Shown in pieces: positions 5,184-62,635 of a stretch of DNA of 64,000 nt (position 1 is the stretch's first letter; the number at the start of each line of letters is the position of its first letter). The notes beneath the pieces are model-generated. The model searched no databases. It was not told where the DNA came from and saw nothing but the letters and a program-made list of their open reading frames with translations. Origin of the DNA: Anthoceros angustus (taxonomy: Eukaryota > Plantae > Anthocerotophyta); contig VJWM01000179.1 of NCBI GenBank assembly GCA_010909165.1, positions 372,001 through 436,000 of the forward strand, in the 5' to 3' direction. Both the position numbers and the translations under genes were made by a program.

Positions 5184-5948
5184 GTGAGATGAATATGTGG
5201 TCCCTGGATTCCATGCTTGTGTTGTGAGTGGAAACCTTCATTTGTGCTACTCCCCTTACCTTCCATGCTTGTCTGTACTGCACGGTGTGCGTTATATGCT
5301 AGCACTACCTTCCAAATTCTGTGTATGACTCTTGGGCATGATGGTATTGGGGTCAGTAAGGGTGTTCACGTAGGCTTCACATAGGCATGCTGGTGTTGTG
5401 ATTTAGGGACCGGTGATATGGGGTGGACAGATTGGTGTTCAGCAGAAGGGCTATGTGATGCCTTGTATGGCCTTGTGATGGTTTGGGCTGATTGGTGATG
5501 CTGATTCCTGCAGCCTGTTATGTTTGGGCCGGCAAGTGCCAGGTTCCACGGTTTGGTGTGGGGAGGACGGCGGGTGTTGTGGTTGCCGCCCGCGTGATTG
5601 GGTGGTCGCCTGGGTGATTTTAGTGGACGCGTGGATGATGTCTTGGGACGGTGGTGATGTGGTGGTCCGCTATCTTGTTGATTGATCGTTGGTGATGTGG
5701 ATGATGGCATGGTGATAAGGTGGACGGATTGGTGATGTCATGGAGTAGGTGGTGCTACATTTGCAGCCTTAGTGATGTGGTGGATGTGTTGGTGTTGTGG
5801 ATGATGGAATGGTGATCACACATGCGGTTTGGTGATGTTTTGGAGTTGTTCCATTTTAGTTGGCATCGCTTGGTGACCTCGAGTCCATCGTTGGAAGTGT
5901 GTTGCACGTTTTGATATTGGCCATCCCATCGGTTATACCAGTTTGCAG
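5184..5948 (+). other. Putative spliceosomal intron in transposase A containing GGTGAT-rich simple repeats
   Basis: Donor cag|GTGAGA at 5184 and acceptor tttgcAG|gagctatat at 5948. Coding similarity stops at the donor and resumes after the acceptor. Confidence 0.55.
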
Positions 5949-8710: not shown

Positions 8711-9068
8711 ACAACCTCGCATATCCGTAGGGGGCACTTGTGGCTGTGTGGGGAAATTGTCGGTCCCACGAGTCATCGAATGACATGCTTCTCATCTCGT
8801 GGCGCTTTCAATACCAAGTCGTTGGTTCTAACCATGATGGGCATGAGAAGAAGCGGATCAAACTTGTTTTCATGGAGACTCATCCAGCTGATTTCGTCCT
8901 GTACTTGAAAGAAAAATTGAAAGAGTTCATCCTGCACGATTTTGTACAACGATGGCAAGGGTTGGAATTTCGTCAGTGCTTGGAGTGGTTCCGGACTGAT
9001 GTTGTCGTCTCTGTCATGGACTTTAGTCAGAACTATGCGTTTGGTGTTCAAAACGAAATTCAATCTAT
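8711..9068 (+). pseudogene. Sola2-like transposase A, first catalytic Asp region
   Basis: KLKEFILHDFVQRWQGLEFRQCLEWFRTDVVVSVMDFSQNYAFGVQNEIQS matches the DF(A/S)ENY...Q.EIQS motif. Confidence 0.85.
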
Positions 9069-9103
9069 AACAGCGTCTGGGTAGAAAGGGGTTTCTCCGG
9101 TAA
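9069..9103 (+). repeat. Left TIR of the MTase-carrying element
   Basis: aacagcgtctgggtagaaaggggtttctccggtaa. Confidence 0.92.
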
Positions 9104-9548
9104 TAAGGGGTTTAGGCAAAAAGTCCGTCTTTTCTTAGGCAAAAACGCCCCGGCGGGATGTTTTCCTGGTTTTCAGCATGTGCACTTGACTTGGAATACA
9201 GTGATGTATTCCAGGGTGCCCGGCTCTGCATGTTTTGGCCCCACCGTACCTCCATTTAGGCAGTGAAAGAGCCATTTAAGAAGGTGTAAATGAAATTAAA
9301 TATGTGTTTTGCTAGGTTTTTTAGCATGTCTTCATGTCATCCGTAACGGGGTTTGCTCGGCGGCTTGCATCCAGATATGAGTGCGCGCACAAGCGCGCAC
9401 TCAACGCCTCATGCATGCAATTATATATTGGGTCTATATCCGAGAATGATTAACATATGAAATTATTGGATGATGAAGTTTGCAAATCAACCGCAATGCA
9501 AAATCGCTATTATTCCAATGTAGGTGATACTCAATGGTGTGCGGAAGA

Positions 9549-12500
9549 TCATCTCTTCCATCTACCATGAGGGATCGCAATTCTGAGGACAAACATGGTC
9601 ATTACGCTGCCCGTTTTTCCTTCTAGTCCGTCGGACGCTGGTTGGGAGCTATCTTCAAACATGCCTTCAAAACCCCGTGGGGTTAGGATCTCCATTACCT
9701 CGTCCGCGTGTCCGTCTCGCAATTGGTCCAACTAATGCTTTGGCGGCATGGACTCGCTGGATCATCCTCAACTCGAACATGGTCTTGGGTTTTAATATCA
9801 TTGACCATGATGGTGAAACGTTTCTCCTCGCCTCAAGGTGGTGGGTGAGCCCTTGTCGTTATTCCATTTCCGATTTGCATATGGTGGAGTTCAAATAGCT
9901 TGGTCTTTATGAGCTCTTGGGTTCTCACATAAAGCGTGCTCTCTCGCGTCAGGGCAAACCCATATGAAAGAATAAAGGTCTCCGCCAGCACAAGGCGATC
10001 GAGATGCTTCGGACGCTTCCGCCTTTGACGTAGAGCATTCTTGTCCGCACAGTTCGGTGGCAAAATCTCTTCGGGTATATAACGGCCTTCAAATGCATTG
10101 CTGTTCTCCGTAACCCACCATTGCACGACCAGTGCAGTTCGTCATCGAAATCTAGGTTCTCCACCGCAACCCAAAAGGCTGTTTTGGTCATCCGCCTCAC
10201 ATGCAACGGCAATCATATGGCCACGGATCTCGATCACATCTCCCTAACTGCACTTTCCCTTGCCCTTGCGCCTTGGGATATAATTACCAAGGTACATGCC
10301 TTGGCCCTACGCTCCATCGACCGAGAGAAGCAGAACATCCGGCACAAGGATGGTATCGCTATTTCGCTCAGCCTCTACCCGATTGTACCACTGCCATGGT
10401 ATCTCTAGCTCATGGTCGACGCCACTGGAGATTTTCGTACAGATCAGCGCTTGTGACTCCCAAAAGCCGTTCCACCATATCTTGTCGGCACTGGTAAGGT
10501 ACTTCTGCATCGGCTCTTCGAGTGCCTTCCTGATGCCATCCAATGATCTATGAGGGTTGGGATCTGGAGCTTTCCCATGTACTTGTAGTGCACACAGAGG
10601 TGCCCCACAGATGGGGGTTTCTGGGATGAGGCGAAGAAACTCAAGTCCCTCGTCGGGTTCCCAGTGAGGTGTGGTTGATAAATATTTGCCAAGCACTACA
10701 ACCATGGCCCCGCCTGCGCGTTCTTCCCTCGTGATTTTAAATTGATGTTGATAACTATGGTTGTTCAAACGTCCAAGCAGCATCCGTGCCCCTTTTACCC
10801 ATCCCAGAAGGCCATACATACCTGCTGAAATCCGCAACACCGGTAATCACTTTCACTTCTGGATTTGGGGTATACGCTTGTTCAATAAGCGTCATCAGAG
10901 TTGGTAGCGACATTGCCTTCTTATGTCTTAGACTTTTTGAAAAACAAGAGAACATTTGATCCACTAAATCATGGGTGTGCCCGACAAGAAGGAATCCAAC
11001 TTTAACCTTCTCGAATACCCGCTTCTTCACCAGCATACTCAGATATGCAAACAACAGCATATTCTTGTTCTCCCGCGCGGTGTTGTCCAATTGAAGGTAA
11101 AAGGTCTTTGGCAAGACACCGTCATAGTTGAGTATAATATTTTGAATAATATGTATCTTCAGGTTGGCATCATTGCGGATGTTCAGTTAGTTGACATACA
11201 CCTTCGTCTTCATCACATTATTGTATACCAAACAACCAACAACATGAACACGAATTAACCCATCGAAATCTTTGGAGGCCCCAGATATTATTTTAAAAGC
11301 GGGCCGACTTGGACATTCGGAAGTGCATCTTCCATAATGCGCAAAATGAGAGTGAGATACGTTTGACATCCCCGCTGCGTTCTTCCCTCGTGATTTTAAA
11401 TTGATGTTGATAACTATGGTTGTTCAAGCGTCCAAGCAGCATCCGTGCCCCTTTTACCCATCCAAGGCCATACATACCTTGAAATCCATAACACGGTAAT
11501 CACTTTCACTTGGATTTGGGGTATACGCTTGTTCAATAAGCGTCATCGAGTTAGTAGCGACATTGCCTTCTTATGTCTTAGACTTTTTGAAAAACAAGAG
11601 AACATTTGATCCACGAATCATGGGTGTGCCCGACAAGAAGGAATCCAACTTTAACCTTCTCGAATACCCGCTTCTTCACCAGCATACTCGGATATGCAAA
11701 CAACGATATTCTTGTTCTCTCGCGGTGTTGTCCAATTGAAGGTAAAGGTCTTTGGCAAGACACCGTCATAGTTGAGTATAATATCTTGAATAATATGTAT
11801 CGTCAGTTGGCATCATTGCGGATGTTCGGGTAGTTGACATACACCTTCGTCTTCATCACATTATTGTATACCAAACAACCAACAACATGAACACGAATTA
11901 ACCCATCGAAATCTTTGGAGCACATTTTGCGGGCTCGGATCTTGACATTCGAAGTGCATCTTCCATAATGCGCAAAATGAGAGTGAGATCGTTTGACATC
12001 CCCGCCTGCCACCTCCCGCTTGTAGTCTTGGAAGATCTCGCCTCAGATAGGAGTCGCAGTTGAACACCGCAACATTTGGCATGCGCTCCGCAGTTATCTT
12101 ACAAAATTGGTCCATCCAAGCAATGCATTCTAGCACATGGTCTTGCTTTGGACGGGCTTGGACCTTAATTTCTGATGACCATGGTGTGTTCCGGAGAACC
12201 CTGTTCGTCAGATCGTGATACCGTCTCCATCCAATGCAGAACACCTTGCGAAAACTTCAAACACAACATTGCGTTCTCCGGTCTCCGGAAAGGTAGTTGA
12301 TCACCTTTGTTGTGTCGGGATAGACTTGGACTGCCTCAAGCAGACTTTCCAAATACAGTTCCTGTTGCTCTCGACCCATTCCCAAGAAGCGATACCTGAG
12401 GTTTTCTATATGTTTCCTTCCAACTTTCAGCAAACACCCTTTGCTACAACAATGCGACGACCATGCACTCTGAACCTGCTCAGTAGAACACAACCTTTGC

Positions 12501-12940
12501 GCACGCTTCCACCGTCTGCTGGGATATTGCCGACGTTTTTGAGGGCTGGCCTGCACGAAAGTCTCCGACAAAGCTTTGGGATTGAAGTTTGCTCAAGTCC
12601 TCCAAAACCACCGTCAATGATGTCGCAATCTTCCGATGGAATGTGGAAACGCTCGTCTGCCGCATCGAGAATAGCCTGCCCCGAGAGCATCTTCTCGGCT
12701 GCGAGATCCACGCCCCGCCACTTCCTTGTTCCATGTCACAAAAGATTAGGCCTTGGGAAAGAAGAACTTCGTCATTCTCTAATGGAGTCGATCCATGACC
12801 ATTACCCGTTTTGGAATAGAAGCATCGCGTCGATCCATAATGAACCCGCGCGATGTCTCGATGCCCACTCTCCCGAGGCGATTTGAAACCGCTCCTACAA
12901 CTGTCTTCTACATTCCGCCGCCCGCAATCGAATGCCATGC
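9549..12940 (-). pseudogene. DUF7869-type (Sola1-like) DDD transposase, frameshifted, with an internal tandem duplication
   Basis: Core TFYLQLDNTARENKN...KVKVGFLLVGHTHDLVDQMFS (10755-11114). Upstream are VHVVGCLVY, AWM..F....ERMP and the HCCSKGCL Cys motif; a C-terminal extension follows. Confidence 0.85.
10708..12009. repeat. Tandem duplication, 2 x ~650 bp
   Basis: Units 10708-11370 and 11370-12009 are bounded by ccccgc(c)tgc at 10708, 11370 and 12000. The copies differ mostly by short indels. Confidence 0.9.
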
Positions 12941-13399
12941 CGCCTCGATTTTGCCATATGTTTCAAGGGCTCTGCAGATGCTGGATGAAGGTACCCACAC
13001 GGTATGAGACAAGAATGTGAAAAAGGATAGTGGCCCCGTAATCCGAACGTTCAAATTAGGGGACTTCATGGTTGGACATGATGACAGCCGCCACAAAATA
13101 AACTCTCGCAACGGCAACCCGACGCCGACAAAGTTTAGTAAATCCCAGGTTACTTAACCCTTGGTTAAACAAGTCAGGGTTCAAGCCTAGTTAATTAACC
13201 ATGGTTCCATCTTAACCGAGGGCATCCTAAAAAACCGGAAGAGCCCGTTTTTAGGGTTTGCTCCACAGTTTTGGTGCGCAGCCATTTTATATCACCGTTT
13301 GCATCCAGGATTTGGGATTGTCTGGCGGCATGTACCAAGCGATTGGAGGCAAGGATCGGTGGTGGGGAGTGAGCCGACAAGCGCCCGAATCTCGGTGAG

Positions 13400-14090
13400 C
13401 CTAATCTCGAGAGGCGTGGCCTGGGCGCGCCCAAGGCCCCGCCATGGCTGCGCCCAAGGCGCGCCACGGCCATGGCGCGCCTGGCGTGCATGGCGCGCCC
13501 AAGGGCGGCCATGGCGCCATGGCGGCCATGGGCGCCATGGGCCACCATGGGCGCGCCCAAGGGCGCCATGCGCCATGGGCGCCCAGGGGGTGCCCCTGCA
13601 TGCGCCATGGCGCCAAGGGCGCGCCCAGGCGTGCCTCGGGCGTGCCCAGGCGCCCATGGCGCCTGGCGCCCATGGCGCCCAGCGCCCAGGGGGTGCCCCT
13701 GGGCGCCAGGCGCCCATGGCTGGTCATGGGCGCGCCAAGGGCGCCATGGCGCCTGGCGCCCAGGGGCGCCCAGGCGCCCATGGCGCCTGGGCCTGGGCGC
13801 GCCCAGGGTGCCATGGGCGCGCCTGGGCGCGCCTGGCGCGCCCAGGCGTGCCAGGCATGCCGCGCGCCTGGGCGCCATGGCTCGCCATGGGCCATGGGCG
13901 TGCCCAAGGGCGTGCCCATGGCTGGTCATGGGCGCGCCCAAGGGGCTGCCATGGCCAAGGCGCGGCCTACAGCGCGCCTGGTCGGCTCAAGGGCGCCCAA
14001 TGGCGCCAAGGGCGTGCCCATGGCGCCCAAGGCGTGCCCTTGGGCTTCCACAAGCGCGCCCAAGGGCATGCCGAAGGATTCGGTGTTCAT
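13400..14090. repeat. ~700-bp GC-rich array of CCATGG / GGCGCC / GCGCGC palindromes between the divergent transposase and MTase genes
   Basis: Units like ggcgcccatggcgcgcccaagg. The array generates the overlapping junk ORFs at 13195-14105. Confidence 0.9.
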
Positions 14091-14311
14091 AATCTGATAC
14101 AATGAAAATGTTTTGGTGATTTGCAGGAAACAGGGTGGAGGCTCTCCCTCGAGAGTCTCTGAAACGTGTGTTCTCGCAGGATTCTGCAAGAATCATCACC
14201 GACCTTCTCGAGAATGCGAAATAGCAGGTTGGTGCCCCTTAAATTGTATTCTCTACGGACAGTTGCTAACATGTGGCCGATTTTCATTCCTGCGTGTTTT
14301 TGATTCCAGAT

Positions 14312-15005
14312 ATGTCAAGTAGTGGGAGAAAAGTCCGTGAAGCACGCCAACGTAGTGGACCATCCTCCCGAACCTCCTCAAGCGAACGATGCATGTGCCG
14401 AGGCAAGGGGCTGGAAACGGGAAGGCAGGGGGTGATGGCATGGTGGTGCAGAAACCCAAGGCTGTGGAATCACAAGCAGATTGCACATGGGCACTCACAA
14501 GGGAAGAGTGGAGCGTCCCAAGGGGCTTCAGAAGGGAAGAAGAGGTTGGGGAAGGGAGCATCTGGGTTAGCTGAAGATAGTACCCAGACATTGTTTGACG
14601 AATTAGGCATTGTTCTAGGCACTACGCTCGAGAACCCTTTCACTTCGCGAGAAAGGACTGCCTTGAAGGAGATATGCGTGCATCTTCCTGAACAGGGTCT
14701 ACTTGACAAGGAATGGTGCATCCATGAAGAAGGTACTGATTCCACTGTGCCAACTTTGATCCAATCCTGTTATGGGTCAATGGATACATGGACGTGTTGA
14801 AGACACAAGATAGTGGTGGGCTACATTCTATGGGCTTGAAGTGCAAGTCGATCAAATGTGAGAGTGAAGCTTTTGATCCGCACTATGAAAGAGAAGTTTT
14901 ACATGAAGACTTCTAATTGTCATCGGATGCTTGTCTTGAGCGCGGACAAGTTGATTGCGAGACGACACACGACCGAGAGGACTTGACGCTCTTACACTAG
15001 ACAAG
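14312..15005 (+). pseudogene. Probable first coding exon of the ParB-like/MTase gene
   Basis: ATG at 14312 follows an acceptor-like ttttgattccAG. The segment ends at donor aag|GTGAGC (15006). ...LDALTLDK joins in phase 0 to TFVNALTFL... after the acceptor at 15577. Confidence 0.45.
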
Positions 15006-15577
15006 GTGAGCTTGTTTCTATGTTTTCGTTCTAACTGAGTGGTTTGAAGGATGAGTTGTCAGTTACCTCCTCAATGACCTGTACACGTGGACTGGTGCGC
15101 GCACCGCCTCCCGGGGCCCATGGTGCGCGCGCGCACCGCCTCCCTCCCGCCTCCCGGGGCCCATGGTGCGCGCATGTGCGCGCACTGCTCCTCCCTCCCG
15201 CCTGGTGCGCGCAGCCAGCCTGAGGCGCACAAGTGCGCGCACCAAGCTCATGGTGCGCGCGGTGCGCATGGTGCGCGCGCGCGCACCCCTCTCGCGCACA
15301 TGTGCGCGCGGTGCGCGCGCGCGCACCGCCATCCCGCCTCCGGCGCTGGTGCGCGCGCGCGCGCACCAAGCCCCCCAGACAGTGCGCGCACAAGTGCGCG
15401 CACCGCCTCTACCCTCCCTTGGCTCAGAGGGGCGGTGCGCGCGCACGCGCGCACCATGCCCCTACAGCGGCTGCGCTCATGTGCGCGCACCTGGCCGCCG
15501 GCCGGTGCTTGTGAAGTTGTCTTCCATTGTTCAATTTTTGCCGGGATGGTAATCCTCTTCTGGTTTTTTCTTCACAG
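15006..15577 (+). other. Putative intron filled with GCGCGCAC repeats
   Basis: GT at 15006, ttttttcttcacAG at 15577, and a (GCGC)-rich array at ~15095-15490. Confidence 0.55.
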
Positions 15578-18500
15578 ACGTTTGTGAATGCCCTGACGTT
15601 TCTCCGCAAAGAGATCGTAGTTGGCTTAATTATGACAAAGATGGCCGACGAAGCAGTGGGTGGTCAACCTATTGTGGAGAAGGCGGAAGGAAGACTACCG
15701 CAATTTGCAACATTTGCTAAGCCGCCGTCTGCAAATGCTATGGAGGAAGAACTATCGAGAAGACTCCATGGACCAAGATACCGAAGGTATGAAGCGCCCG
15801 GATAGAGAGGTTGAGGATGAAGCAGATCGTGGGGATCGCGAAGAGGGGGGAGCAGATGATGAGGAGGCGGATGTTGAAGCCGTGGGTTTGAACGCCCAAG
15901 CTGAGATGAATAGGAATGAGGAGACCCAAAGTGAGGGACTATCCAAACGGTCCTCAAATGCATCCAAAAATCAGTTGTTTTTGCCATCAGCTAAACAAAT
16001 ATTGAAGAGTCTAGAAAACATCCGCCAGGTATCTGAAGGCGAAAGAGCAAAGGGATATATCGTCGAAAGAGAAGAAGGCAGGAAGAAAGGCCAGAACAGA
16101 ACCCAAGACGAGGACACAGAGGAGGATCTTCAGGAAATTGTTCGAGACTCGCCTGTGAAAAAGAAAGGCAAGGGCAACAGCGTGAAGAGGGCTACGCATA
16201 CCGACGTGGACAATAGTCCGGCAACTGGGCGAGTGATTACAAAAGCAGTGATGACAGACAACGATAGAGTGGAGCGGGCGCAGCAGAACAGGGATCCTCT
16301 CAACCAAATCCGGGAGTCAGCACACAAGAAGAGATGCATCCCTCACACGGACATGGTTGCCATCACCAAGCTGAGAAGCGCTGATTATTTAACCCGAGAT
16401 GCTCAAATCAAGAGTAGATGAGTCTTGGGAAAACATCTTCTCCGAGAAATAAAAAGGGACCAAAGGCAAGAAGGAGTACTTCCTCCTTTGTATGATAGAC
16501 CCAAGAGAGTGCCCAAGATCACTACGATAAGGATAAGTCAAGAAACAACAATACACTATGGGAGTGTTAGGAGGAAATCACGCTTCTATGCTTTCCGAGA
16601 CTATATGCCGAGGACGGAGAATTCGCACTACCAATATATGGAAGCCCATATCTATGCCGGGTTGACGAAGCCGAGATGAGATGTTTGGCAAGCGGATCAC
16701 AATGTAAAGGCCCAGTGAAGCGGATGTCCTTCATCGAGCAAGTTCGATACATCCACGATGAGATGAAGATTGCGGCTGCGGATGGCGTTAACATTACTAT
16801 GGACTGGAAATACTGCGGGGATGCTCGGCGTGATCGGGGATGCCGCATCGTGAAGATATGCAGTTGGTAGACCGAAACTGCGTGCTCGTGCAGTCTCCGG
16901 CGCATGTCTGGGATAGGGTGGATGAAGTATTCGACCTTTGGGAGAAAGGCGAGCTACCGGAGCAGGGAAACCGCAAAAAAGGCAGCAAAAGAGGAAAATC
17001 CAAACGTGGCGGCCCTGAACCTGAACCAGCAGTGCGAGATCCGAATCTTATTGTAAAGCCAATGCATGCGACGAACTGGCGGGTGTTCCAGGGAATGCCT
17101 CCGGGAGAGGCTGGCGAACGGATTATGCTATCAGCACTGGAGAAAGTAATTCAGGGAGAGTTAAGCGTGAGCGGCATGAAGACGTGGATCATAAAGGCAA
17201 AAAAGTTAAATGTGATACAAACATTGCTCGGGTTTACGGTGTCGTCATTTGCGAGAGGTTGAGAGAGTACCCACGGCACGGGGCGGATGATATCGCAAAG
17301 TTTCAACCGGTTTTCGACCACATCGTAAGTTATTCTCGCTACATCGGCATTATGGATTAGGTGCGCGCACTTGTTTGCGCATCCCCATCATTGTCAAATT
17401 TCACAATGCTTTTTTGGTACTCGCACACTTTGAAGCAGGCAGAAGAGTACAAAGAAAAAGTCATTCCAGATAGCTTCAAAGAGCATATCAACGCAGCAAG
17501 GAACTGGAAGAGGGTGGAAGACCTTCAGAGAGAATTAGCAGAGGAGGACAATGATGCTAAACTATCCACGTTCCAAGTCCCAAAAAGCAAACAGAAAGTC
17601 AGGTACCAAGTAATTACTGGTGATATTCGCGAAATGGCCGGCTATCTTGGAAAGCGGGAATACAAACTGCTGGTTGTTGATTTGCCAAGAGGGAATGTGT
17701 AATCGGATCGAGATGACATCCAAGATTATGAAAAATCATGGATGGGTTCATGACGAACGGCCGCAAAACCTTTCGAGTGGTATTCATGCATGGTCCGGAT
17801 CGATGCAGACGTTCGAATGCGCCTGAAATGGTGTGCGCGGGGGGGTGTGTATACCATGGTGTGGGAGAAAGATAATTTAATTGCAGATGAAGGTCTATAT
17901 GAGAATTGTGAATATTTTACAGTAGGGTATGGTGTCCACCCTACCGTCGAAGATATGAGGAAATGCAGTGCGCTGTGCAACAGTGCATCAGGGGAGATTG
18001 GAGCCATGCCCGCTTTCATTAGACACAGCGCCGTCGTGAAGAAACTTTTGAATGTGTCAAACGATGGACATGTTGTAAACCCTTACCAGAAACCAATAGG
18101 GCTTATGGTTCTGCTTTATGACCTTTTCACGGAGAGAGGGGAGTGGGTAATAGATGGGTGCTCCAGGAGCGGCAGTGGTATACAGATTATTGGAAGGCCG
18201 CAATTGCATCGCCATCGACTGTGAGCAAAGAAGCACCATTTTCATTGATCGGATAATGGGGCATGAGGTTTTCCGATGAGGAAGAAGACAACCAAGCCAC
18301 ATAAGCGAGGGCATCCGGTTTTCGCAAAGGAGTTAGCAGCGGAAGGTCTATCAAGTCGAGGCGCTTCTTCATTTAACTCATGGCACTTCCGCTCCCATCG
18401 ATCTTGATTTGAGTCAATCCCAGGGACCACAGAAGAAAAAGGAGAAAGCAACAACGAAAGAATCAAAAACACCAAAGAAGCGAGTCGATGAGCAAGAAAC

Positions 18501-18678
18501 AGCCCCAGCGGTGAAGGATCCCACTTGGGACATTCAGCATTTACAGACGTTTGGCATGGGCGGATTTATAGGGGCAAACCCAACAGATCAAAATCTTGCG
18601 GTTCACGATCCTCGCCTACAGTCTATCAACGATGACATTATTGTCCCGAGATCAGAAACACAAACGTTTGAGGAGTAA
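15578..18678 (+). pseudogene. ParB/Sulfiredoxin-like domain + beta-class amino (N4C/N6A) DNA methyltransferase, frameshifted
   Basis: ParB-like: DAQI...EGVLP, VLGGNH (16564-16581, alternative frame), YMEAHIYAGLT, MSFIEQVR. MTase: YKLLVVDLPRG (motif IV position, D at 17679), NPYQKPIGLM (18078), GEWVIDGCSRSGSG (motif I, 18153), then GRNCIAID (18196-18219, after a frameshift). The order IV...X-I is the beta class, compare HPTQKP...GDLVLDPFAGSGTT...GRRFIGIE. Confidence 0.8.
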
Positions 18679-20131
18679 CCTGATTGAGAATGTGAACATA
18701 AATTAGGGTTTGGCGGTGTAGGCGGCGCATGTTTGCGCATTTAACCGTAATATTTTTCCTGATATACACAAGTCCACAAGGTGGACTACGGTTTCATGCT
18801 GTCATTATTGCTGTGCATTTCAATAACACACATTATGTGAAAGCAACTGCTTCTTCGTTATAGGGAAAACACGAGGGTTTGCTACATAATAGCCGATTTG
18901 TGTTCGGATTTTGCATGGCGCAAAAAGGAGTCCATCCTTAGACATGTGCAAGAAGGGGTTACTGGAGAAACCCCTTTCTACCCAGACGCTGTTCTATGCA
19001 TTGGCATAATGACCAGGTTTCGATTTTTTGTCCTGGTGTTCTATAGGAGGATGGGTCCAATTGATGCACAGGATCCGGCTGCTAACATCGACAAATACTA
19101 TCACTTCTACATCAGTGATGATATGGTCCACGATACATTGTTTGTACAGCACTGCCTCATGTTGCATTGGCAGTGGATGCTTGATTCTGGGTTTCCTGTG
19201 CCCCGGGAACATTGGTGTTGGTCGGATTGGGCAGCTAGTCAATTTAAAGCTTGTAGGCTTTCTTACTTTGTTGCTCGTTACCCTAGCTTGACTGGGGTTG
19301 CAAGATGCTATGGTCGTTTTTGGCTAAGGGGCATGGCAAAGGCGAACATGACGAGCAGTGCAATCTTGAAAAGGGCATTGCGGTCGCAGAGTCCTCTCCG
19401 AGATCGAAACACAAACGCTTGAGGAGTAACGATTGAGAATGTGAACATAAATTAGGGTTTGGCGGTGGCGCGTACATGTTTTTCGCCGTAATATTTTTCC
19501 GATATACACAAGTCCACAAGGTGGACTACGGTTTCATCTTGTCATTATTGCTGTACATTTCAATAACACACATTATGTGAAAGCAATCGCTTCTTCGTTA
19601 TAGGAAAACACGAGGGTTTGCTACATAATAGCCGATTTGTGTTCGGATTTTGCATGGCGCAAAAGGGTCCATCCTTAGACATGTGCAAGAAGGGGTTCTT
19701 GGAGAAACCCTTTCTACCCAGATTCTATGCATTGGCATAATGACCAGGTTTCGATTTTTTGTCCCGTGTTCTATAGGAGGATGGGTCCAATTGATGCACG
19801 GATCCGGCTAACATCGACAAATACTATCACTTCTACATCGGTGATGATATGGTCCACGATACATTGTTTGTACAGCACCGCCTCATGTACTGGCGATGCG
19901 GATGCTTGATTCTGGGTTTCCTGTGCCCCGGGAACATTGGTGTTGGTCGGATTGGGCAGCTAGTCAATTTAAAGCTTGTAGGCTTTCTTACTTTGTTGCT
20001 CGTTACCCTAGCTTGACTGGGGGTTGCAAGATGCTATGGTCGTTTTTTGGCAGTGGGCATGGCAAAGGCGAACATGACGGAGCAGGTGCAATCTTGAAAA
20101 GGGCATTGCGGGCTGCAGAGTCCTCTCCGAA
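18648..20131. repeat. Tandem duplication, 2 x ~750 bp, spanning the right TIR and flanking transposase A
   Basis: Copies start at ~18648 and ~19400 (aaacacaaacg.ttgaggagtaac). The second copy has a degraded TIR at ~19690-19725. Confidence 0.9.
18959..18993 (-). repeat. Right TIR of the MTase-carrying element
   Basis: ttactggagaaacccctttctacccagacgctgtt. Confidence 0.92.
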
Positions 20132-47962: not shown

Positions 47963-49527
47963 TTACCCGTTGGTGGTGTCCTCGCCTCGAGCTCGTCGTC
48001 TCTCACGTTACTGCGCTCGGGCGCTCGGCGATCTGGCGTCCGACTCTCTAATTCTCCTTAACTACCTCCGTCCTCACGCATCCACGCTTTTACGGGCGAT
48101 TTCATTCCCGCAGCGCCAAAATGTGCGCGACTTTCGTGAGCGGTAGCGCACAATCCGTGTCGTTGTAGGAAGAGTCCGTTCCCAAAGGAATGATAGGCTC
48201 CGTTTGCGTTTGATTCTTCTCACTTGCTCGTTCGGTCACGCACACATTCATATTCGCTAACTACTAGCGTTCGCACGGGCCGGTATGGCCAAGCGTTTGA
48301 GACCCGTTCGCGTCCGTTCGTTCGTTCGTCCTCGCACCTCGTCATCCTCTCTCCACTCCCCACACTCTCTCGGAAAAGCTACCGCGGTCCGGACCTCCTC
48401 GTCGTTCGGGCCTCTCCGTCCGGGCTCTACGCCCTCCGAGTCCTCCGGCTCACCGCGTTCCGGTCCGTTCGGCCCGGCTGACTCGGGCGACCAGTCCCGA
48501 TCACCCTTCACCGCACACCACAACACGTTAGGTCGTCACGGGACCTGATCTCTCCGGGTCGTGCACCTTGACTCGGGACTCACGTTAGCAAGAAGGCATC
48601 CTTCAATCTTGAAGGTTGCGGCGTGCAGGGTGGTATTTCCTCCGATACCAGCAGGCAGCGTCCCGGGACCCCTTGGAGCAATTTGGATGAGCTGCGCATC
48701 CGAACCTTCTCCGTTGAAGTTTGCGCGACAAAATCCTCCACGAAGGTTTGATCTCTCTCCTTCTTACCTCCAAAGAGAATCGCTTGTCGGCGTTGTTGCC
48801 ATCGCGATCGGCAAGGGTGAGGAACCGCCCTTACCACCGCGACTTGGTGCTTCCTCCTCACGATCCAACTCCACCACGCTTACATTGGTGGTGTGTCGCC
48901 TCGAGCTCGTCGTCTCTCACGTGCTGCGCGGGCGCTCGGCGCCAACGTCCGACTCTCTCGATTCGTAACTACCTCCGTCCTCACGCATCCACGCTTTTAC
49001 GGGCGATTTCATTCCCGGCAGCGGCGCCAAAATGTGGCGCGACTTTCGAGCCGGTAGGTAGCGCACAATCCGTGTCGTTGTAGGAAGAGTCCGTTCCCAA
49101 AGGAATGATAGGCTCCGTTTGCGGCGTTTGATTCTTACCTCACTTGCGTCGTTCGGTCTCACGCACACATTCTCGCTAACTACTACAACGTTCACGGGCC
49201 GGTATGGCCAAGCGTTTAAGGACCCGTTCGTCCGTTCGTTCACGTTCGTCACTCGCACCTCTTCGTTCCTCTCTCCACTCACACACTATCGGTCTTAGAA
49301 GCAGCGGGTTACGATCGGACCTCCTCGTCGTTCGGGCCTCTCCGTCCGGGCTCTGCGCCCTCCGAGTCCCTCGGCTCACCTGCGTTCCGGTCCGTTCGGC
49401 GGCGCGGCTCAGGCGAGCACGGGTCCCGATCACCCTTCCTGCACACACACACCACGTTAGGTCGTCACGGGACCAGTCAATCTCCGGGTCGTGCGCTTTC
49501 GGTGACTCGGGACTCACGTTAGCAAGA
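47675..49527. repeat. Tandem duplication, 2 x ~0.9 kb, across the gag start / PBS / LTR end
   Basis: Copies begin agaaggcatccttcaatcttgaagg at ~47675 and ~48591. It creates a second degenerate PBS at ~48106-48118. Confidence 0.9.
49013..49029 (-). other. Primer-binding site complementary to the tRNA-Asp 3' end
   Basis: Minus-strand ACA-ttt-TGGCGCCGCTGCCGGGA, similar to the Athila PBS TGGCGCCGTTGCCGGGG. Confidence 0.85.
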
Positions 49528-52500
49528 AGACACACAGTGCAGAGCGGCATCAACACCAAGAAGATGATTTATTGCGACCTCGGCCCTCTTATACTCGCCC
49601 AGTCGGCGTCTTTATTACACCCTATTACGGGCGGTGGCCATTTCGGTCCTAATCGGCCGCCTACCATCCTATTCCTCCTCCTATCTCCTTCGTCGGCGGT
49701 GGGTGGGAAGGTCCGGGTTCCGCCTCGGGATTGGTGGTCAATCTCCGGCATTGCGGCGCGCAATCGGATGATCGCGGGACCCCTTCCTCTTCCGGAATCA
49801 CAGCCGGGTTGGGCTCTGGCGGCGTCGGCGACCGCCGTTACCACGTCATCCTCCCTGGCCCCGTGGGTCCCCTCCGGTGGGGCCCATTGTCTGCTCCCCA
49901 GCGTAAGTCGAGGGGCTCCTCCTTCTGAGTCCGGACCTCGGGGTCGGTCTCGACTCGGTCGGAACCGAGTCTGCCTCTTGAGTCAGGTCTGCTGGGTCGG
50001 TCTCATCTCTGGGGTTCGGACCTCGGGGTCGAACTTATTCAGTCGGTCTCCCAACTCCGGACCCCTTACTGCGGACCTCTTCGCTGGGTCCTCATCCCTT
50101 CCCAGACCCTTGTCTTGGGTCGGTTGGTTCCTTCCCCCCAGGCCCCCTCTATCTTCCGGCGGTTCTGCGGACTTACAGGATTCGTTGTATGGCGCGTCTG
50201 CTCCTCTTGATGCTCTCTCCCCCTCGTCTCTAAGCAGGGCCACTAGGGTCCCGTCTTGTCCCCGTGCCCTTCATCCCCCGGGCCTTCCAGGGGTCGTGCA
50301 GTGGCGGGGGCTTGAGGAGCTCGGTGTGGTAATAGGCAAAGTCCAGATCAACTTGGTGCCTCTTCCATGTGCGGGCACCGATACTCCCCGCCATTGGTGC
50401 TCGGTGGGCGTCTTTGCCCGGCTTGTTGGACCACCTCCCCTGAGTTTTGGTGGGCCGGGCTCTCACGCGAGGCTCGTGCCTCGGTCACCTCCTGCGGCCT
50501 TGTTGCTCCACTCGCTGCTCCTCCGTCGTTTCGCTCGCGCTTACCGCCATAGCGCGGCGTTCCCCGCCTTCTCAAGCGGACCAGCGGCTTCTTTTCCGTC
50601 CGGTGCTCTCGCTCCTCCGTTCATTACGGCGTTAACTCCGCCATCTCCCTCTCCCGGTGAACGCTCTGCCCGTGCGGGCTCGCCAGTCCTTCTCCATTTG
50701 GCGTCTGCTCCTGTTCCGCCCGTCTCCTCCGTCCAGCAGTGGGCCGCTCTATTTCTGTTCGTGATCGCGATCACGCCCTGACTACCATTCCTCTCGGTGG
50801 TAGTTTGGGTTGACTCAAGGTCTCCTTGCGGTCTTCCATCTCACTGGCTCCACCTCCGCGGTGAGGCGGAGATCCTCCATCTCCTTGCGCGCCCTCCTCG
50901 GCATGGGCGCCCTTTTGCTCCGCCTCCATCTTGAGTTAGTGGCTATCCTGTCTCCCTCCACGGTTCCGATCACGATAGTGATCCCGGTCGATCTTAGCCT
51001 CCCTCTTCCTGCTTCGCCCATTTGGCGGCTGGTCGGTCAGGCGCCTCCGGGATCCGAGCCTTCTGCTTGGGCCTCCTCGCCTCCTGCGCTCCCTCACTGC
51101 GGAGGTCTTGCCGTGCTTGGGCCTCCAGCTGCTTGTTGCTCACCCGGTGAAGGAATTTGTCGATCTGTCGGATGGACGGACTTCCCTCTCGGCCTCCTGC
51201 GTTTCCCTTCCTCGATCGGCGAGGCTTGGCCTTCCTCCTTGCCTCCTGGGCCCCCTCAGCTGCTCACGGAGGTACCATCGCCTCGGGTGGCTTCTACCTC
51301 AGGTCTTCTCGGCCATCCGAGACCCCAAAGCATCGTCCATGGCGGTAGCGGACCCAGTGTTTCTTCCACGGCCGCCAGTGAGGCTCCCACAAAGTCCGTA
51401 GTGGGAGGCGGGCATTTCTGATCCGCAAGGACCTCCATACCATGATCCGGAGTAAGTCGGTGGGTTCTCGGACCTAATCGGGACCCTTAGGTCACGAGTC
51501 TTTGGTCAGCTTCACCCTCCTTGGCCCTCTTGGCATGAGTTCTTTGCCCTCTTTCACAGGGCTCGGAGGAGGTGAGAGTCAGGAGCAAGCCCTTTTGCCC
51601 CTTCACAGGGGCAGGCTCCGGTGCAGTGCTGCCCGGTGACCTCCCACTCCTTGCGTCCTTCGCCCTCCTTCGCCTCTTGACTTCTTGCCACTCAGGTGGC
51701 GGGGGTAGAATCTTGCACCGTCGAGTCTTTGCGTTGGTGGCATCTTGCGCCTCTTGGTTCCCTGAGTCGGGGCTCTGGTGTTCTGGTGGGCCGGGCTGTG
51801 GGGCCGCTCCTGTTCTCCTCTGCTTGGTGCTCGGAGGCACCGAGGAAGGCGATTTCCTTCCCATACTTCCACAGGTGGTGAGGGGTCCGTTCACGTATGG
51901 AGTCGGAATCCTCGATCGTCCTCCTCCGGGTCAGTTTGGCCTTGAGGTGGCCTCCCCCTCGGCGCCCTTGCGCTCCACTTGGCGGGGCCTCGGCCCCGGG
52001 CGCCGCTCACTCTCCCTCCTTGAGGCTCATGTCCCCATACATGGATCGGTATGGGGCGGCCAGTGGCGAGGCTTCGCTCCTGAGCTTGCGCCTCCCAGGC
52101 GCCGGGCGAAGATAATCCTTCCCGATCCGCCCTCTTCCCCTTGGCGCATGCGGGGAATACCAACAGTTATCACCAAGGTGATCCACCTTGGTGGCGAGTT
52201 CAATGGACAATGATCGGGCTACGCCCCCTTACGGTATCCGGCGGTCGGATATCAACCACCGTTGGTGGTCGCTGCGTTCGAGCCTCGCATCGCGGTGCGG
52301 CCCTATCTTCCCCCGCCTTGAGGGGCTCGGCACCACGCCCCTTCTTCCTCCTTTGGGCGGTTGTAGGCCTCGGACCTCAAGGTCCATCGCCTCGGGTCCT
52401 CCGGAGGTTCTTGGACCGAACCTCCTTGTTGGCCGCCACATCTTTGGGCGAACTCCGGACGGTGTGTTGTCAGCGTCGACGACAGGAACACATCCGGTGC

Positions 52501-58039: not shown

Positions 58040-58385
58040 ATGAAGGAAGCACGCAATCGACTTCCGGCAAAGAATGACATCCAAACTCTTCACGTGGCCA
58101 CAGATAGCGAGCGGTTGGAGGCGTCGCATATGGACGAAGACTACCTCACAAATGTACGTCAGTCTGCTTACTCGAAAAAGGTGGTGCCCGAAACTGTGTT
58201 GGTGAAACTTGAAAATTTGAGGCCTGCATTATTCTTGACCCCTGATGCCCAGATCCGGAAAGTTGATGAGGCCTGGGCAAACTATCTTGCCCGTGTCATT
58301 GCAAAGGGAAGGATTGAAGAAGGAGTGCTTCCCCTATTATGATGATTGACCCTGCAGAGTGCACAGATATTGAACAACTTGATTG
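58040..58385 (+). pseudogene. Second, divergent ParB-like gene fragment, truncated by element B
   Basis: ERLEASHMDEDYLTNVRQSAYSKKVVPETVLVKLENLRPALFLTPDAQI...EGVLP aligns with DRVERAQQNRDPLNQIRESAHKKRCIPHTDMVAITKLRSADYLTRDAQI...EGVLP at ~16260-16485. Confidence 0.7.
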
Positions 58386-60419: not shown

Positions 60420-62635
60420 TGTTGGGCATTTGAGAAGAAGATTTGATGGTTGCCCTCGAAGCCTTTGTGAAGATGGTTACTGAATGTCAAAATAGCCTCG
60501 TTTCACAGGATAGAGTGGACGATTTTCTTGCGAGAACTCTGTTCCCCACAACGCTTGTAAGGCGTAATGTCAACGGTCCACGGACCCGTGTCGTCTGCCT
60601 AATTCACCAAGCTCATATATTAAATATGAATGTGCTTACGGACCACAAGATTTTCTTACGGTGTGGAGCCTTTCATTGATGTGACAAACCGTCAAAAAGG
60701 GGAAAGGCGCGCCGTCACGCATGAAGCCGATAGGAAAAGGGGTGTAAATTCCAGTTCTTCATCGATTATTGCAATGGCGGGAATTGCAGAGAATCAATTC
60801 AATGGCACCACATAGACATGAATGGTGATTTACGCCATGGTTTGTTAGCTCTTGATGCCCTAATGTTTCTCTTGCTCTGTTTTATCTATGGCAAAGCGGA
60901 ATGGGTAAAGCACAAGCTCTTATGCCGGTGACCAATTACCAAATTATGTGTGATCATGAGGAGGATGTGTATCGCAGAAGAAGGACAACCCAAGATGCCA
61001 CTTGGTCCGGATGATTTCTTATTGCCCAAGGATATAAGAAACATACAGAGCTTGATTGCAGGACATGGAGATTGCATCATCTTGATGAGGAAAGTGTGAG
61101 AATATGGATGGACTTACACAAGCATGAGATTTTCTTTTCTTCCTTCAGCTCTAAGTCTACTGACGGGTGTCACTTTGCACTGGGTATTCAGACACCATTT
61201 CAGCACTCATGTATGTTGAGGTGGGGCCATAACTCGATTGTCTCTATGGATGCCACGTTCAGGACTAACAAATGGAAATTTCAGTTGTTTACAGTGTTGG
61301 TCTTCGATGACCACATGAACGGGCTACCAGCGGCATGGATCATTTCTGACAACGGCACTGCTGACAATATTAGTGCATGGCTGGGGGCTTTAAAGCAGAT
61401 GTTGGAGAAGTCGATCCAGTGGAAGCCCAATGCTTTCTTGGTGGGTGATTGCCAAGCCGAGATTAACGCTATCGACAAGTATTCGGCTCTAACATGTTGG
61501 TGTTTTTGTTTGTGGCATGTGCGCCGTGCTTGGTTGAGACAACTCATAAAGAAGGTGAAAAATAAAGTCGGAGGCGAGATGATGAGCACACTTGGTAAAA
61601 TTATGTATATGGAGGAGCAAGGCTGCGGTATGGAGAAAGTGCGGGCGGAGCTTGACGCATTCTACTCGACATACGCAATATGAGCCCAATTTGTGACTTA
61701 TTTTAAGCGGCAATGGGCGATTATGACTATGTGGATCAAAGCTGGAAGTCCCACATGCTGGCCAAGAGGCGCATAGAAGCCTACCACCAGCACTTGAAAT
61801 TCGGATGTCGCTAACGAAGAAGCGGCTTACGGTGAGCGTTTAGATTGGTTACTTCATATCCTTGTGGATGAAGTCAATCGGCATTTTGGTTCCAATCACA
61901 ATGCAAGTTGCTGAATATTGTTCACAACACCAAGTTGAGAGACTTGTGCACCATGCAATTACTAAGGCACTGCAAATTCCAAATGTGGATGTCACACTCC
62001 CGACAACGGATAATGCTTCAGCATACGTTAAAAGTCGAAGGCACTTAACGGGTCAGTGAGTCGAGGTGCTAAATGGTGGAAGGCGGTGGGGCTTGCAACT
62101 GCAAACAAGGATTGAATGGCTTTGTTTGCAAACATCAAGTGAAGGTTTTGCTGATGTTAAATCGAATGACAGCTACACAGATGCTTGTGCACAAACTGAT
62201 GGATATGTCGAAGGAACATGGTACTGATAATTTCAATTTGGCAAGTCAGGTCATGCACACAACAAGTTATGAGGAGCCTGCAGTGAATGTTTGCCAGGAT
62301 GGGCATGAACTACGCTGCCCCAAACAGGATGTTGTCCAAGAAGGGCCCCAAGTACCTTGCCTGAACCAGGTGTCCAGTCCATGGACGTGAGTTGGGCAGA
62401 GATTAGGGGAATGGTGGAGAAGTGGCCACAGTTAGAAAATCATGTTGCTGCCATGATGGGACAATTAGTAAGGCAGGTCCAAGGGTTGGGCGCTGATCTT
62501 CATCTTCACCAGTTGCATGAAACACCAATTCTACACCACAATCCTGCTCATACAGACAATTCTCTTAAACGGAAAAGCCTTTTGGGAAACGGGAGGAGTC
62601 GGCAGAGGAAGAACGGCCCCAAGATCAGAAAGTGA
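60420..62635 (+). pseudogene. MULE transposase with a C-terminal SWIM zinc finger, frameshifted
   Basis: FALGIQTPFQ...SIVSMDATFRTNKWKFQLFTVLVFD...GLPAAWII; AFLVGDCQAE; CLWHVRRAW; IEAYHQHLK (~61790); SWIM CNCKQGLNGFVCKHQVKV (62073 ORF). Confidence 0.88.

Follow-up and report, generated by a model that had tools for sequence, protein, structure and literature searches.

Evidence for a decayed Sola1-like DNA transposon in the Anthoceros angustus assembly with a ParB-like/beta-class amino-methyltransferase pseudogene opposite its transposase

Introduction

Few transposons are equipped with DNA-modifying enzymes of their own; examples are the KDZ elements of fungi, which bear TET/JBP genes, and algal elements with ParB-fused enzymes. 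Such elements are a possible route by which eukaryotes could gain DNA marks of the prokaryotic type. Here we analyze an element of this kind, lying at positions 9069-18993 of a 64-kb window of Anthoceros angustus (assembly GCA_010909165.1, contig VJWM01000179.1, positions 372,001-436,000, forward strand). The window is the whole stretch of DNA that was analyzed, and all positions refer to it.

Among the closest described systems is Sola1-1_Ec32 of Ectocarpus, a 21.5-kb element of the Sola-1 superfamily in which the gene opposite the transposase encodes a protein of 1104 amino acids (aa) with ParB-like and predicted N4C/N6A (cytosine N4/adenine N6) DNA methyltransferase domains, and whose proposed role is to bind and modify the element's own DNA (Genome Biol 2025; PMC12477816). 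A first interpretation of the Anthoceros locus, made from the letters alone (the sequence-only reading), took the pairing of transposase and methyltransferase to be undescribed; the Ectocarpus publication has made that belief out of date. Fusions of ParB to N6_N4 methyltransferases are also found in phages and prophages (PMC12704722; Iyer et al. 2016, PMC4738411). In the red alga Bostrychia, Plavaka elements carry the accessory genes PAG2 (an N6A methylase with a SET domain) and PAG3 (ParB with a 2OG-oxygenase); tandem inverted-repeat arrays adjoin the ParB-fused genes, and self-binding has been proposed (bioRxiv 10.1101/2025.02.11.637652).

The Anthoceros locus is very probably a real but decayed cut-and-paste DNA transposon of the DUF7869 (Sola1-like) type, nested in the remnant of another DUF7869-like element and with both of its genes reduced to pseudogenes, from a family in which the transposase lies head to head with a gene for a ParB-like/beta-class amino-methyltransferase.

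Results

The element is 9.9 kb long and ends in 35-nt terminal inverted repeats (TIRs), at 9069-9103 on the plus strand (beginning AACAGCG) and at 18959-18993 on the minus strand, which are identical at 34 of 35 positions. Its terminus reads AACAGCGTCTGGGTAGAAAGGGG, and the 30-nt terminus occurs at two sites only in the 64-kb window, with a chance expectation of 0. Read symmetrically, as AACAGCG...CGCTGTT, the ends leave a 4-bp target site duplication (TSD), with copies of CTAT at 9065-9068 and 18994-18997. The corresponding empty site was present in a small public DNA run (X1), where one 330-nt contig passes from 8950-9068 directly into 18994 to about 19067 with one CTAT. Several positions of this contig deviate from the window, so that it represents a paralogous, uninterrupted copy of the flanks, and its single-CTAT junction fixes the boundaries of the insertion to the base. 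Both the TIRs and the 4-bp duplication claimed by the sequence-only reading are thereby borne out. At the right end (18945-18993), the similarity of some X1 contigs is confined to the last ~48 bp, or stops 12 bp before the terminus, and the sequences diverge from there, a pattern that points to non-autonomous derivatives or to sister families with common termini.

Regarding the transposase, it is a minus-strand pseudogene at 9833-12938. The open reading frame (ORF) at 10755-11114 on that strand matches PF25273 (DUF7869) with an E-value of 2e-38, in agreement with the type of transposase originally proposed, and in tblastn the region from 12508 to 10451 aligns colinearly with the two genes on the transposase side of L001, a related element described below. 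The reading frame shifts near 10800. Besides, about 650 bp are duplicated in tandem inside the gene at 10718-11920 (copies 10718-11277 and 11377-11920), in five colinear blocks with 97-99% identity and a spacing of 643-659 nt (95% identity over the whole copy, gaps included), so that the DUF7869 catalytic core is encoded twice.

The cargo gene on the opposite strand is a plus-strand pseudogene at 15660-18276, of roughly 870 codons, to which a profile of the family aligns colinearly in alternating frames (16492-18249). The motifs named in the sequence-only reading are all at the claimed places: GGNH at 16570, DLPRG at 17679, NPYQKP at 18078, the motif I sequence DGCSRSGSG at 18153 and GRNCIAID at 18196. 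The succession of DLPRG, NPYQKP and DGCSRSGSG is the motif order of beta-class enzymes, and the methyltransferase domain (17451-18276, plus strand) matches the family profiles with i-Evalues from 1e-22 to 4e-33. An exhaustive HMMER search with the piece at 17754-18221 returned 14 protein matches (best E-value 1.3e-11, 39% identity), including Gb_37443 of Ginkgo biloba and P0011, a metagenomic protein of 789 aa. In all ten of the relatives that were scanned, PF01555 (N6_N4_Mtase) scored above the gathering threshold, and PF01555 clusters made up 67 of the 100 Atlas clusters nearest to the cargo by language-model features. When a profile of the full-length relatives was compared with the PDB, it matched DpnA/M1.HpyAVI (1.3e-6) and also MboIIA, M.BceJIV, CcrM, RsrI and the bdelloid N4CMT. 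In an AlphaFold (AF2) model of P0011, with a predicted local distance difference test (pLDDT) score of 74, residues 523-766 superpose on residues 1-255 of CcrM with a Z-score of 23.4 and a root-mean-square deviation of 2.8 Å.

The ParB-like core lies at 16492-16712 on the plus strand and is recognizable by VLGGNHAS at 16570, which corresponds to GGGHSREAR in the family, and by HIYAGLT..DHN. The family motif may correspond to the arginine patch (GERRxRA) of ParB proteins; at the equivalent place the window has GGNHAS. The fold was assessed on the relative P0011 and not on the broken copy of the window. When residues 85-325 of P0011 were modelled alone (241 residues, pLDDT 79), the top 40 Foldseek matches in the PDB were almost all ParB, Noc, KorB, PadC and sulfiredoxin, the best of them with an E-value of 2.6e-4 and prob 1.0, and with template-modelling (TM) scores of 0.3-0.65 across matches. 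Atlas features likewise indicate ParB_N and DUF6551 clusters. Judged by sequence comparison and predicted folds, the cargo family is a fusion of a ParB-like module to a beta-class amino (N6A/N4C-type) DNA methyltransferase, as the sequence-only reading had it.

A second trace of the cargo family was observed in the window at 58040-58385 (plus strand). It is a truncated fragment with stops that shows homology to the ParB-like N-terminus of the cargo (..PDAQIRKVDEAWANYLARVIAKGRIEEGVLPLL.., parallel to 16380-16500), and the family profile matches it weakly at 58336-58383 (i-Evalue 0.25).

The ParB-methyltransferase gene is a component of a DUF7869 transposon family. L001 is a complete element of 8.85 kb on an 8,915-bp metagenome contig of the Joint Genome Institute (JGI), bounded by 28-nt TIRs at 20-47 and 8844-8871 that begin with AACAC, where those of the window begin with AACAG. 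Its TSD is ambiguous, GATAT being 2 nt off the left TIR and directly adjoining the right one. Between the TIRs, a DUF7869 gene occupies one strand and the intact gene for P0011 the other, head to head like in the window. P0011 has 13 paralogues in Chara braunii (CBR_g), and Ginkgo has 5 copies, namely Gb_37443 and four paralogues. In X1, dozens of short contigs are 85-99% identical to the cargo and transposase genes; they represent several diverged copies, so the family is multi-copy. A search of public runs with the cargo gene listed none, and a second search listed X1 and no RNA run. Word-index protein searches with P0011, profile A2 and the Ginkgo protein P0004 found only proteins of Chara, the metagenome and Ginkgo, and did not reach Ectocarpus, Marchantia or other plants.

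Several points weigh against this reading of the element and its family. The seven plus-strand ORF pieces of the cargo gene have no direct Pfam match at E<=1, neither to PF01555 nor to ParB, so the homology that the sequence-only reading expected from these models is demonstrated through the relatives, by their PF01555 matches, profile and fold. For the N-terminal regions of the relatives, Pfam gave no ParB_N match at E<=10 and only weak ones to DUF6551 (E-values 0.005-0.03); the TM-scores to ParB proteins are modest, because two domains were aligned at once. At locus L003 of Chara, no gene with DUF7869 lies within 10 kb, which means that not every copy sits in a compact element. The window and L001 have inverted-repeat arrays adjoining the cargo gene, but a search upstream of it in L002-L004 revealed none, so the idea that such arrays are ParB sites stays hypothetical. 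The assignment of the DUF7869 transposase to the DDD transposases of Sola1 is provisional, since it is based on the 4-bp TSD and the cargo in common with Sola1-1_Ec32; Sola elements are reported to produce 4-bp TSDs (Bao et al. 2009). Finally, the canonical motif IV of amino-methyltransferases, (D/N/S)-P-P-(Y/F/W), was found neither in the window nor in its closest relatives, and in DLPRG a leucine and an arginine stand where the first proline and the aromatic would be expected.

This last point bears on catalysis. The sequence-only reading described DLPRG as motif IV-like; its position and order fit that description, while the motif itself is non-canonical and activity is not assured. Across the family, motif IV follows the pattern D-[FIL]-P-[YHCR]-G, with DFPYG or DFPCG in Chara and L001, DIPHG in Ginkgo and DLPRG in the window and in the relatives P0001, P0002 and P0007. 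Since the last three share only 35-50% identity with one another, DLPRG is a conserved feature of a subfamily and not a product of decay. The S-adenosylmethionine (SAM)-binding motif I (D-x-[CF]-S-G-S-G-[TS] family-wide) and the PYQKP helix are conserved in the family. In amino-methyltransferases, the aromatic residue of DPPY stacks on the flipped base, and in DLPRG an arginine takes its place. To our knowledge, a motif IV that is missing the first proline and, as here, the aromatic as well sets these proteins apart from all characterized amino-methyltransferases. With these two residues lost, the protein could differ in its activity, in its base specificity or even in its substrate, and catalysis by the DLPRG subfamily is, as far as its sequence tells, uncertain.

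Hence, one could argue that the accessory protein of this subfamily is an inactive pseudo-methyltransferase, which has kept the binding of SAM and DNA for a structural or regulatory role (end pairing, target choice or shielding) and writes neither N6-methyladenine (6mA) nor N4-methylcytosine (4mC). The persistence of DLPRG across such diverged relatives and the arginine in place of the base-stacking residue speak for it, as do the DIPHG of Ginkgo, the restriction of the aromatic to the Chara/metagenome clade (DFPYG) and a motif I that is conserved throughout. On the other hand, the aspartate and the second proline of motif IV are conserved together with motif I and the PYQKP helix, which fits a working site with altered specificity, and the beta-class domain fold appears complete in the model. 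We regard the loss of activity as unlikely on balance, and it is the alternative that survives best.

Far less probable is that the methyltransferase gene was captured once, or inserted separately, in this copy and stands outside the transposon family. The window contains only one TIR-bounded copy, the examined Chara paralogue has no transposase within 10 kb, and those X1 contigs whose match is confined to the last ~48 bp at the right look as non-autonomous derivatives would. Against this stand L001, an independent complete element whose TIRs enclose both genes in the orientation found in the window, the lack of an additional TIR/TSD pair around the cargo gene in the window, and the pairing published for Ectocarpus Sola1-1 (PMC12477816). 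One-off capture is thus largely refuted, and the pairing seen by the sequence-only reading extends beyond a single copy.

As a member of this family, the window copy is broken. Its cargo gene has at least seven in-frame stops (16419, 16528, 16534, 16677, 17260, 17700 and 17751) and at least three frameshifts (16584/16617, 16712/16807 and ~18180), and the profile alignment moves from frame 1 (16492-16584) to frame 0 (16617-16712), frame 1 (16807-17316), frame 0 (17451-18182) and again frame 1 (18166-18249). Introns were considered as the source of the frame changes. At three of the four they were rejected, as the gap would not accommodate an intron and the alignments cross stops; the alignments of the cargo to intron-less relatives pass straight through them. 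With these stops and frameshifts, the copy is unable to make the cargo protein, and since the transposase is broken as well, the element could move only with proteins provided in trans by intact copies. The claim that the element encodes a writer of 4mC or 6mA consequently fails for this copy. That it still yields a functional protein, with the stops and frameshifts being assembly errors or unrecognized introns, is the least probable alternative of all, for which the nearly perfect TIRs, the intact TSD and the space for an intron of ~130 nt at the frame change 17316/17451 can be cited, but intron-less relatives align across the stops of 17700 and 17751, there is no intron space at 16584/16617 and 16712/16807, seven in-frame stops are atypical of assembly error, and the transposase carries its 650-bp tandem duplication.

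Regarding the insertion site, the element interrupts an ORF whose left half lies at 8731-9068 (plus strand), left over from a further DUF7869-like transposon of high copy number (X1 depth 49-85), and whose right half lies at 18998-19422 (plus strand). After excision of the element together with one CTAT, the ORF is continuous over the junction, reading ..VMDFSQNYAFGVQNEIQS up to it (ending in EIQS) and MHWHNDQVSIF beyond it. The interrupted ORF contains the motifs MDFSQNY and HWHNDQ; for its right half, 68 of the 100 nearest Atlas clusters, found by language-model features, have DUF7869. The summed depth of the flanks in X1 is high. The sequence-only reading held that removal of the element heals a host gene: the ORF does read across the healed junction, but a frameshift follows about 11 codons past it and the ORF is a remnant of a DUF7869-like transposase. 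A host gene was rejected on account of this resemblance, the frameshift and the high copy number. The DUF7869-like character and the copy number of the flanking ORF point to a nested insertion, of a Sola-like element into a Sola-like element, with no cellular gene disrupted.

Between the divergent genes lies a 700-bp, GC-rich array of short palindromic units (13400-14090), a candidate for binding sites or a promoter. A second GC-rich palindrome array was observed at 15160-15460, and the units across both include GGCGCC, CCATGG, GGCGCGCC and GTGCGCGCAC. Judged by their sequence, the two arrays might serve for binding of the ParB type or as a bidirectional promoter, or be a plain minisatellite. 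In L001, four copies of a 34-52-nt unit (CGGTTTTAAGAAAAAAGACCGATAGCGATATACG) occur in both orientations at 5676-5941, ~75 bp upstream of the ParB-methyltransferase ORF, and are candidate binding sites.

Elsewhere in the window, a plus-strand ORF at 61072-61683 has a MULE transposase domain (PF10551, E-value 3.5e-12) and a ZSWIM RNaseH-like domain. The ORF at 49204-50781 (plus strand) and the other ORFs of 200-525 aa at 22-52 kb, the longest of the window, gave no Pfam match at E<=0.01.

Discussion

The pairing of a Sola-like transposase with a ParB-like/beta-class methyltransferase gene is already known; what is new here is its representation at the multi-copy level in the streptophyte/land-plant lineage (Chara, Ginkgo and the Anthoceros genome) and the conserved, non-canonical DLPRG motif. 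The window copy is a dead relic and contributes no functional evidence itself. As a family, the Sola-like elements with a ParB-methyltransferase gene offer a concrete case for asking whether 6mA or 4mC is written in the genomes of the plant lineage.

In intact members, the ParB-like module (a nucleotide-binding fold with a helix-turn-helix) probably binds the element's own DNA, possibly at the palindromic array. Such binding would tether the methyltransferase domain to the DNA of the element, which this domain could then mark or otherwise act on, methyl transfer not being assured in the DLPRG subfamily. The fullest version of this idea is that, in a land-plant-like genome, intact members combine a ParB-type clamp, switched by nucleoside triphosphates, with a rewired (D-L-P-R-G) methyltransferase; that this protein loads at the element's own array and deposits 6mA or 4mC, or acts on another substrate; that the mark protects the element from silencing by the 5-methylcytosine (5mC) of the host or licenses transposition; and that such elements could have delivered amino-methyltransferases to streptophytes. 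We offer it as speculation and consider it improbable when taken as a whole.

Marchantia DN4MT1a/b and the bdelloid N4CMT are, like the cargo, eukaryotic beta-class amino-methyltransferases of prokaryotic origin, and the model of the relative P0011 matches the structure of N4CMT (8s9m) with a Z-score of 19.8. They differ from the cargo in their motif IV (TSPPY in DN4MT1; TSPPY/SPPY for the pair) and in being host genes with demonstrated 4mC activity. The family profile is closer to N6A enzymes (DpnA 1e-6 versus N4CMT 2e-3), favouring DpnA, MboIIA and CcrM over N4CMT. Beyond the beta-class fold, we found no specific tie to DN4MT1 or N4CMT of the sort that the sequence-only reading had suggested.

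The phage and prophage fusions have the architecture of the cargo, with an N-terminal ParB fold and a C-terminal beta-class methyltransferase of PF01555, but they are prokaryotic or viral, keep the canonical DPPY and have no tie to a eukaryotic DDD/DDE transposase. The accessory genes of Plavaka/KDZ elements (TET/JBP in fungi, PAG2 and PAG3 in Bostrychia) share with the window the setting of DNA-modifying enzymes on a eukaryotic cut-and-paste transposon, and the ParB-like module with adjoining inverted-repeat arrays in Bostrychia is a further likeness. The transposase there belongs to another superfamily, and ParB is fused to an oxygenase instead of a methyltransferase.

L001 with P0011 and the Chara CBR_g paralogues resemble the window in having DUF7869 and ParB-methyltransferase genes head to head between TIRs beginning with AACA, a layout seen in L001. 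The genes of L001 are intact, its motif IV is DFPYG and it is only a distant relative: P0011 and the window cargo share 24% identity over the methyltransferase domain, and the ParB part is colinear by profile. Sola1-1_Ec32, likened here by its published description, comes from a brown alga instead of a streptophyte/land plant and is longer (21.5 versus 9.9 kb), as is its accessory protein (1104 aa versus roughly 870 codons); the window copy, for its part, is a pseudogene of a subfamily with DLPRG in place of DPPY. Both are DNA transposons with TIRs in which a ParB-methyltransferase gene lies opposite the transposase.

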